Part shown: piece after piece, positions 17,517 through 17,598 of the stretch
Position numbering within the stretch: position 1 is the stretch's first letter
Layout: every line of letters starts with the position of its first letter
Sequence record: PQ390715.1
Strand: one strand, 5' to 3'
Length of the DNA: 64,000 nt
Notes under the pieces: model-generated
The model's database searches: none
The model's input: the letters and a program-made list of their open reading frames with translations, nothing else
Told to the model about the DNA's origin: nothing
Translations under genes and position numbers: made by a program

Positions 17517-17598
17517 TGGTCCAGGCGACAGGACTCGAACCTGCATACTCCAGTTACTCGATTAACGACGATTTAGAAGACCGTTGAGATACGCCCGG
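17517..17598 (-). tRNA. non-canonical D-armless tRNA-like RNA, TCT anticodon
   Basis: CCGGGCG/CGCCTGG acceptor +A+CCA; T-arm GCAGG-TTCGAGT-CCTGT; ACGGT-CTTCTAA-ATCGT; only 7 nt in place of the D arm; 23-nt variable region. Confidence 0.7.

Follow-up and report, generated by a model that had tools for sequence, protein, structure and literature searches.

The question raised by this locus is whether a tRNA-like RNA with no D hairpin, encoded among the tRNA genes of an Escherichia phage, can be a working tRNA and, if so, which amino acid and codon it serves. The element spans 82 nucleotides (positions 17517-17598, minus strand) of the analysed window, a stretch of 64,000 nucleotides from record PQ390715.1, and lies in the tRNA cluster of Escherichia phage SHEFM2K, a jumbo phage of 348 kb with which the window agrees at 100% identity over the 401 bases that were compared. 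An earlier note had described it as a D-armless tRNA-like RNA with a UCU anticodon and a long variable arm, possibly a decoy for anticodon nucleases or a tRNA charged with a non-cognate amino acid such as serine. The tRNA-like features named there (standard acceptor, anticodon and T arms, A73, an encoded CCA and the lack of a D hairpin) are all seen on the minus strand, where the order from 5′ to 3′ (17598 to 17517) is acceptor stem, UAU, CUC, A, anticodon arm, 23 nucleotides, T arm, A73 and CCA. The acceptor stem (CCGGGCG/CGCCUGG) comprises seven base pairs including one G-U, the anticodon arm consists of a stem of five base pairs and a loop of seven nucleotides with U33 and a purine at position 37, and the T stem has five base pairs and a UUCRA loop, all as in canonical tRNAs; a local D hairpin (positions 10-25) is absent and seven bases stand in its place. 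The Rfam tRNA model (RF00005) matched the element at 30.7 bits against a gathering score of 29 (E=0.0019 in a 6-kb search) with the D arm deleted in the alignment, and no Rfam family other than tRNA was found at the element; ARAGORN called six neighbouring tRNAs and missed the element, and the tRNAscan-SE annotation of the deposited record holds the same six tRNAs only. Comparative sequence analysis leads us to propose, with a probability of roughly 0.75, that the element is a working AGA-decoding tRNA-Arg of the phage with a rewired backbone; the existence of the underlying RNA family and of its nested helix is close to certain.

The element was established to belong to a conserved family that departs from the cloverleaf, in agreement with the earlier impression that it is no ordinary tRNA gene. 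It matched 254 of 50,697 phage records by blastn (E<=1e-10), 247 of them near full length, the carriers including PBECO4 and 121Q (relatives of the window's phage), Felix O1 and relatives, among them Felixounavirus, as well as Justusliebigvirus, Mydovirus and Sugarlandvirus; Streptomyces phages emerged in a looser blastn search. About a hundred further loci came from three pattern scans of IMG/VR, and a covariance model built from 22 loci gave 73 matches in viral contigs with scores of 76-106 bits, the score of ordinary tRNAs in the same loci being approximately 25-39 bits. Comparison of homologues by covariance model, which had been put forward as a test of the element, thereby proved decisive. 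The alignment built with this model (A4) holds 71 distinct sequences in 83 columns, from phages infecting Proteobacteria and Actinobacteria, and is nearly gap-free, and given its single 1-nt indel the bias introduced by model fitting is small. A bacterial origin, or residence as prophage copies, was considered and rejected, as a pattern scan of 185,579 species genomes returned 12 matches of which four were true members, all on contigs of metagenome-assembled genomes (three of the four with several tRNA genes in the stretch around them), and as none of 5,426 complete E. coli genomes carries a family member. A full-text literature search, for which the sequence itself also served as a query and which covered neither older nor subscription-only papers, returned no description of the family, which is apparently undescribed so far.

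The evidence that carries the structural claim is covariation. Pairing in the three standard stems (acceptor, anticodon and T) reaches 95-99% over the 71 sequences, 15 of their 17 pairs show double changes, and for the complete set of 22 tested pairs double changes were found at 18; this covariation was reached by none of 500 shuffles, and controls with slid strands dropped to 34-48% paired. Beyond the three standard stems, columns 12-14 and 41-43, corresponding to the CUC at the D-arm place and the first GAG of the 23-nt region, are Watson-Crick paired in all 71 sequences by nine different triplet types (CUC/GAG, CGC/GCG, CAC/GUG, CAG/CUG, CAU/AUG, CGG/CCG, CUU/AAG, CCC/GGG and CGU/ACG). Pair 12-43 is C-G throughout, pair 13-42 is U-A (41), G-C (16), A-U (13) or C-G (1), and pair 14-41 is C-G (57), G-C (8) or U-A (6). 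When three-nucleotide windows of the region were compared, only the first GAG paired with CUC everywhere (1.00), and mutual information peaked between columns 13, 14 and 15 and columns 42, 41 and 40, respectively. The last of these combinations, column 15/40 (0.79 bit), occurs as A.C (41), C.A (12), C-G (6), A-U (5) and U.G (4) and resembles the 26.44 pair of ordinary tRNAs, and column 11/44, always U.U in A4, is an A-U pair in a divergent member (L058:3325). The earlier note had instead paired UA(U)CUC with the second GAGUA, an arrangement that fails, with 29 and 8 of the 71 sequences unpaired at its two variable positions and a value of 0.58 for the second GAG in the window scan. The GUUA/UAAC and GAGUA motifs on which that note relied are indeed present, but the hairpin drawn from the former is not upheld: it shows no covariation, three of its pairs vary hardly or not at all, and the one pair that does vary, the fourth, is open or falls in a gap in 20 of 71 sequences. 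A paired variable arm as in class II tRNAs is thus unlikely, and a long variable arm of the type recognised by SerRS is further contradicted by the absence of the GUUA/UAAC motif from divergent members and by the overlap of the hairpin with the proven strand 41-43.

The bases around the nested helix are strongly conserved. The linker that precedes its 3′ strand is CGUUAA in 54 and CAUUAA in 12 of the 71 sequences, and comprises 3-5 unrelated bases in divergent members; the paired GAG sits just before an invariant UAA, and UAA-N-UGGAGUAU is near-invariant after the 3′ strand. This D-loop-like motif, which includes GGA in 70 sequences and GGC in one, agrees with the A-R-Y-Y-GGAUA D loops of canonical phage tRNA-Arg. 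Bases corresponding by position to the elbow and core of a tRNA are likewise invariant or nearly so, namely U8, an A14-like base, an A15-like base with its U48-like partner, G18 and G19 with the T-loop UUCGA, and an A21-like base, and a G10-C25-like pairing is present in 57 of 71 sequences.

These observations suggest how the RNA would fold. The anticodon arm would be nested within the D-like stem, the CUC strand following right after U8-A9-U and the GAG strand lying eight bases past the anticodon stem. As the nested helix continues into the anticodon stem with one base between them on the 5′ strand, the two would form a single stack whose 3′ strand carries the bulge CGUUAAUC; a normal D stem likewise stacks on the anticodon stem. 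By position the D-loop-like segment would supply A14, A15, G18, G19, A20 and A21, with presumed tertiary roles to match, and through its final, U48-like U the chain would enter the T stem directly. The canonical order 8-9 / 10-21 / 22-43 / 44-48 would become 8-9 / 22-43 / linker / 10-21 / 48. An L-shape with new backbone connectivity is plausible because the three joins so created (9-22, 43-10 and 21-48) connect positions that are spatial neighbours in solved tRNA structures. The term 'D-armless' accordingly describes the drawing, though probably not the fold. The rewired order may have arisen from a canonical gene through a duplication and a deletion that together swapped the segments.

In its anticodons the family is specific to arginine. 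Anticodons in A4 are UCU (68), CCU (2) and UCG (1), and divergent members with short linkers carry ACG, GCG, UCG or UCU. A structural search blind to the anticodon, conducted on 1.21 Mb of phage loci that also hold 948 ARAGORN-called tRNAs of all isotypes, returned 96 instances (91 UCU, 2 GCG and one each of ACG, UCG and CCU); no other amino acid identity was found on the rewired design in these loci, and the reversed-sequence control gave no match. Dropping the requirement for the D-loop motif brought up additional matches, but these were misparsed canonical tRNAs and were discarded. The identity set of E. coli arginyl-tRNA synthetase (ArgRS) comprises A20, C35, U or G at position 36 and A or G at position 73 (PMC9976931). 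In the family C35 never varies and is followed by U or G at position 36, and 66 of 71 sequences have G (35) or A (31) as the discriminator, the window having A; C35, U36/G36 and A/G73 are thus present. Of the 71 sequences, 58 have the anticodon loop CUUCUAA and 49 encode CCA. The earlier note had regarded A20 as absent; a GGA invariant but for the GGC exception, however, sits in the D-loop-like segment and matches the GGAUA of canonical phage tRNA-Arg, and the A following directly on GG may be recognised by ArgRS as A20.

Codon usage is consistent with an AGA decoder, with AGA making up 26.6% of arginine codons (10 per 1000 codons) in the open reading frames (ORFs) of the window, and other phage tRNAs of the cluster also match codons favoured by the phage. 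AGA is rare in E. coli. In a study of phage Sf14, AGA was likewise reported to be over-used by the phage (PMC12482277). An element that decodes AGA would probably read AGG as well.

The closest relatives of the element by descent are canonical phage tRNA-Arg(UCU) genes, as its T arm and acceptor 3′ strand are shared with, and over 37 nucleotides 89% identical to, the canonical tRNA-Arg(UCU) of T5-like phages. The canonical genes of the T5-like Epseptimavirus (L044:157-231) and of Mooglevirus Sf14 share with the family the CUUCUAA loop, the GGA motif of the D loop, A/G73 and CCA; they differ in having a local D hairpin (a stem of four base pairs and a loop) before the anticodon arm and a variable loop of five nucleotides, whereas in the rewired family the anticodon arm lies between the two D-stem strands and the D-loop-like segment comes after it. 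The two types also occupy the same site. In the collinear tRNA array of the Ounavirinae the slot between tRNA-Ile(GAU) and tRNA-Ser(UGA) holds a canonical tRNA-Arg(UCU) of 77 nucleotides in Sf14 (L119:15811-15887) and the rewired gene in Felixounavirus; the 70 bases upstream of the slot differ by only three mismatches up to the gene border, and the downstream flank is partly common with a Felix-like contig (L023). Carriers appear to have no other UCU species: SHEFM2K has six annotated tRNAs and none for arginine, and Felixounavirus SP22 and Sugarlandvirus Spivey each encode 25 canonical tRNAs, including Arg(ACG), without a canonical Arg(UCU). Among the loci a canonical UCU gene beside a rewired one is rare, being found on contigs L055 and L048, and on the latter the rewired copy (L048:6108-6184, minus strand) is truncated to its 5′ part through the D-like stem 3′ strand and lies about 600 nucleotides from the canonical gene (L048:5435-5512, minus strand).

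For the element to work as proposed it would first have to mature. Its 4-nt spacing from tRNA-Ser(UGA) suggests that the two form a dicistronic precursor, a promoter-like site standing upstream of both, from which RNase P would process the element; host ArgRS would then charge it via the A20-like base, C35, U36 and A/G73, and the charged element would be used on the ribosome to read AGA. That the E. coli translation machinery accepts a tRNA devoid of any D arm has been demonstrated (PMC11551756). In its widest form the proposal is that phages of enterobacteria, actinobacteria and other hosts use a naturally evolved tRNA which threads the L-shaped core in another order, its D loop being fused to the variable loop, and that the host charges it with its own unmodified ArgRS and reads it on its own ribosomes. 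A non-cloverleaf tRNA that functions in the bacterial cytosol would then be known for the first time, perhaps kept through escape from nucleases that act on the D region; for this composite claim the odds stand, in our estimation, about even.

Several types of unusual tRNA invite comparison. Nearest by drawing are the D-armless tRNA-Ser(AGY/AGN) of metazoan mitochondria, which share with the rewired family the lack of a D hairpin, a short connector, a longer helix on the anticodon side and the decoding of AGN codons. The mitochondrial D-armless tRNAs are without G18G19 and the contact between D and T loops, adopt a Y-like shape and need co-evolved partners (PMC11551756). In contrast, the phage family keeps the elbow bases and a covarying D-like stem (GG, UUCGA and U8 all being present), has a putative arginine identity and would act in the cytosol of bacteria whose machinery is unmodified. 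In the circularly permuted and split tRNA genes of Cyanidioschyzon and Nanoarchaeum, and in engineered circularly permuted tRNAs, either processing restores the standard order in the mature RNA or the permutation shifts the 5′ and 3′ ends; the rewired genes, unlike these, have the acceptor strands at both ends in normal order and two internal segments exchanged, with no sign that order is restored. That the tRNA fold tolerates altered backbone connectivity is shown by these cases (PMC3978253). Allo-tRNAs and the (8/4) and (9/3) tRNAs are bacterial or phage-borne, lie partly in phage tRNA clusters and were found by comparative genomics (PMC5389517); they retain a four-arm cloverleaf with altered stem lengths, whereas in the rewired family the topology of the cloverleaf itself is changed. 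The synthetic D-arm-less 'mini HisT' was used by E. coli synthetase, EF-Tu and ribosome, a pnp mutation of the host being needed for its stability (PMC11551756), but it is artificial and lacks the D-loop bases, whereas the phage family is natural and retains a D-like stem and loop. A paper of 2024 held all known bacterial tRNAs to be canonical cloverleaves.

A number of points weigh against the reading of the element as a working tRNA-Arg. The search patterns fixed some of the motifs, so that their invariance is partly by construction, and the assignments of tertiary contacts rest on invariant bases, beyond the reach of covariation. RNAalifold predicted the three standard helices only and not the nested helix of three base pairs; the calculated energies are -18.6 kcal/mol for the three helices alone, -17.5 with the nested helix and -18.4 for the pairing of the earlier note, a non-tRNA fold has the minimum free energy (-21.5 kcal/mol, z-score -0.55), and nearest-neighbour energies do not separate rival structures about 1 kcal/mol apart. 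The case for the nested helix, as judged from sequence, is a comparative one, and thermodynamics would neither predict nor exclude it. On contig L055 a canonical and a rewired UCU tRNA occur together. In six members without an encoded CCA, moreover, 12-15 additional base pairs between 5′ leader and 3′ trailer prolong the acceptor stem, the sequences of these flanks varying between contigs with complementarity kept, and canonical tRNAs there having 0-4 such pairs; a helix of this kind is atypical of tRNA precursors.

Among other explanations the one that survives best is compatible with a working tRNA-Arg and concerns the reason for its rewiring, namely that the altered D region was selected for escape from host or rival nucleases that act on, or measure from, the D arm or loop. 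Phages are known to overcome tRNA-cutting defences with tRNAs of their own (PMC10264068, PMC11555353, PMC12445682), and Type I-A retrons were suggested to cut tRNA D loops (PMC12916289). The design is spread over unrelated phage families with common hosts (Klebsiella phages Spivey and BIS47 and a 360-kb contig), and its anticodon loop is of the host type (PMC12482277), so that any escape from nucleases must lie elsewhere in the molecule. Set against this, no nuclease that acts on tRNA-Arg(UCU) by way of its D arm emerged from the analysis, no defence or counter-defence gene is consistently linked to the element, and with the D-loop sequence kept a D-loop cutter might still cut; we therefore regard selection for such escape as a tentative and rather less probable addition. 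A second explanation is that the RNA never enters the ribosome and, as a decoy or sponge, captures a target that might be an anticodon nuclease, a modification enzyme or ArgRS. An anticodon loop that perfectly resembles that of the host would fit this purpose, and the long leader-trailer helices of some members could block normal maturation. Such a mimic, however, could do without CCA, A or G as the discriminator, a complete T arm, the elbow bases and anticodons confined to arginine across five arginine codon families, and one would not look for it in the exact place of a canonical tRNA-Arg(UCU) gene or as the sole UCU species in AGA-rich genomes, which makes the decoy proposed in the earlier note unlikely.

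Somewhat less likely again is that the rewired gene is an allele linked to a homing endonuclease, resisting an enzyme that cuts canonical tRNA-Arg genes and carried along with it. HNH genes do begin about 10 nucleotides after the element in SP22 (L001:1595-1942) and Spivey (L002:1592-2101), and the exchange with the canonical gene in the Ounavirinae is cassette-like. The two HNH proteins, however, show no detectable relationship (BLASTP E=0.49) and fall into different Pfam HNH families, an indication that their genes were inserted independently at the 3′ border of the tRNA; no endonuclease is found at that place in the window, ECGD1, BIS47, Yaboi or the Felix-like contig, and HNH-type genes are scattered throughout these tRNA clusters. 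A search for a conserved protein partner found none, the ORF downstream of the element in the window being one of the small ORFs of the MTHEEWM type (see below), for which Pfam gave no match. A recoding tRNA, in which non-cognate charging, for example with serine via a long variable arm, would cause AGA to be read differently, is highly improbable. In length the 23 nucleotides between the anticodon and T arms equal a class II variable arm, and half of the members have G73, which is also the discriminator for serine in E. coli; but, besides the failure of the hairpin described above, its loop would hold the GAG that is paired elsewhere, divergent members have no hairpin, the set of arginine identity elements appears to be complete and the same locus holds a canonical tRNA-Arg in a relative. 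Arginine-only anticodons, the A/G discriminator, the lack of a canonical UCU gene in the carriers checked and its presence at the same locus in Sf14 thus disfavour serine mischarging as well as the decoy. Finally, a decaying tRNA-Arg pseudogene that lost its D arm and drifts, as might be argued from the failure of gene finders to call the element and from the single truncated copy, is excluded by compensatory changes in every helix, invariant loops and 71 distinct sequences, and the recent deletion named as a possible refutation in the earlier note is contradicted by homologues that never possess an intact D hairpin.

The distribution of the working tRNA-Arg that we favour points to exchange among phages with common hosts, given that an almost identical rewired core is found in the Klebsiella phages Spivey (L002) and BIS47 (L004), of unrelated families, and in a 360-kb jumbo-phage contig (L033). 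Some contigs (L058 and likewise L067, L086, L070 and L091) encode two or three rewired isoacceptors with UCU, GCG, UCG, ACG or CCU anticodons, and one of these members (L058:3406) may possess an extra hairpin before the T arm, as judged by eye. Nearly all of the 60 GenBank records that match best leave the homologous gene unannotated or mislabel it, and among the matches listed nearly all have nothing at the site; where it is annotated it appears as tRNA-Leu, tRNA-TERM, tRNA-OTHER, tRNA-Val or plain 'tRNA', records with a tRNA-Leu, tRNA-TERM, tRNA-Val(aac) or tRNA-OTHER label being KM507819/NC_025447 (121Q), MK773491 (7t3), NC_048730 (Yaboi), OQ174510 and PQ657803. An AGA decoder that is missing or mislabelled in annotation skews analyses of phage tRNA sets and of codon compensation. 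If our reading is true, an arginine-specific family with a different helix topology would be an exception, found in nature, with which the usual machinery of bacteria copes, and would provide a natural test of which tRNA connectivity matters to RNase P, ArgRS (through A20), EF-Tu, modification enzymes and the ribosome; it may also be a scaffold for orthogonal tRNAs and a testable lead for tRNA-targeting defence systems and their evasion by phage tRNAs.

Table 1. Coordinates of the parts of the element, its upstream neighbours (window positions) and selected family members (contig positions).
Feature	Position	Strand	Remarks
Acceptor stem 5′ strand CCGGGCG	17592-17598	-	Pairs with 17521-17527; 7/7 pairs double-changed, 99% paired (71 sequences)
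U8-A9-U connector UAU	17589-17591	-	Invariant in alignments A2 and A4; U8/A9 assigned by position
D-like stem 5′ strand CUC	17586-17588	-	Pairs with 17557-17559; geometric equivalent of canonical 23-25
Position-26-like A	17585	-	Opposite C at 17560
Anticodon arm ACGGU-CUUCUAA-AUCGU	17568-17584	-	Anticodon UCU at 17575-17577; 5/5 stem pairs double-changed
Linker/bulge CGUUAAUC, anticodon stem to D-like stem 3′ strand	17560-17567	-	Mostly CGUUAA in relatives
D-like stem 3′ strand GAG	17557-17559	-	Geometric equivalent of canonical 10-12
D-loop-like segment joined to variable-loop end, U AA C U GG A G U A U	17545-17556	-	Near-invariant
T arm GCAGG-UUCGAGU-CCUGU	17528-17544	-	98.9% paired, 3 pairs double-changed; standard UUCGA T loop
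Acceptor 3′ strand, discriminator and CCA	17517-17527	-	3′ strand 17521-17527, A73 17520, encoded CCA 17517-17519; from sequence
tRNA-Ser(UGA), directly upstream	17603-17692	-	ARAGORN and Rfam; CCA ends 4 nt before the element
Promoter-like site GGGACA-16-TATAAT with TG extension	17703-17730	-	Consensus scan, 10/12 matches; consensus match only
Rewired isoacceptors, L058	477-558, 3325-3405, 3406-3496		Same in L067
Rewired isoacceptors, L086	3787-3868, 4086-4167		
Rewired isoacceptors, L070	2688-2766, 4028-4110		
Rewired isoacceptors, L091	12998-13080, 13347-13429		
Leader-trailer helix member, L015	3701-3783		
Leader-trailer helix member, L046	2634-2716		
Leader-trailer helix member, L089	7570-7652		
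Leader-trailer helix member, L055	1611-1693	-	
Leader-trailer helix member, L045	10456-10538		
Leader-trailer helix member, L019	954-1036		

Two further observations were made on the tRNA cluster. A tRNA-Ser with the anticodon ACU (16547-16638, minus strand) was called by ARAGORN, by Rfam (49.9 bits) and by tRNAscan-SE in the record; its A34 is unusual outside tRNA-Arg(ACG), and in the ORFs of the window AGU makes up 33% of serine codons and AGC 5%. Amid the tRNA genes lie five paralogous ORFs of approximately 54-66 amino acids with an N-terminus of the MTHEEWM type (17328-17492, 17167-17331, 18297-18497, 18822-19016 and 19077-19256, all on the minus strand); the two that were searched gave no match in Pfam, and four of the five carry the label PHROG 10970 in the record.

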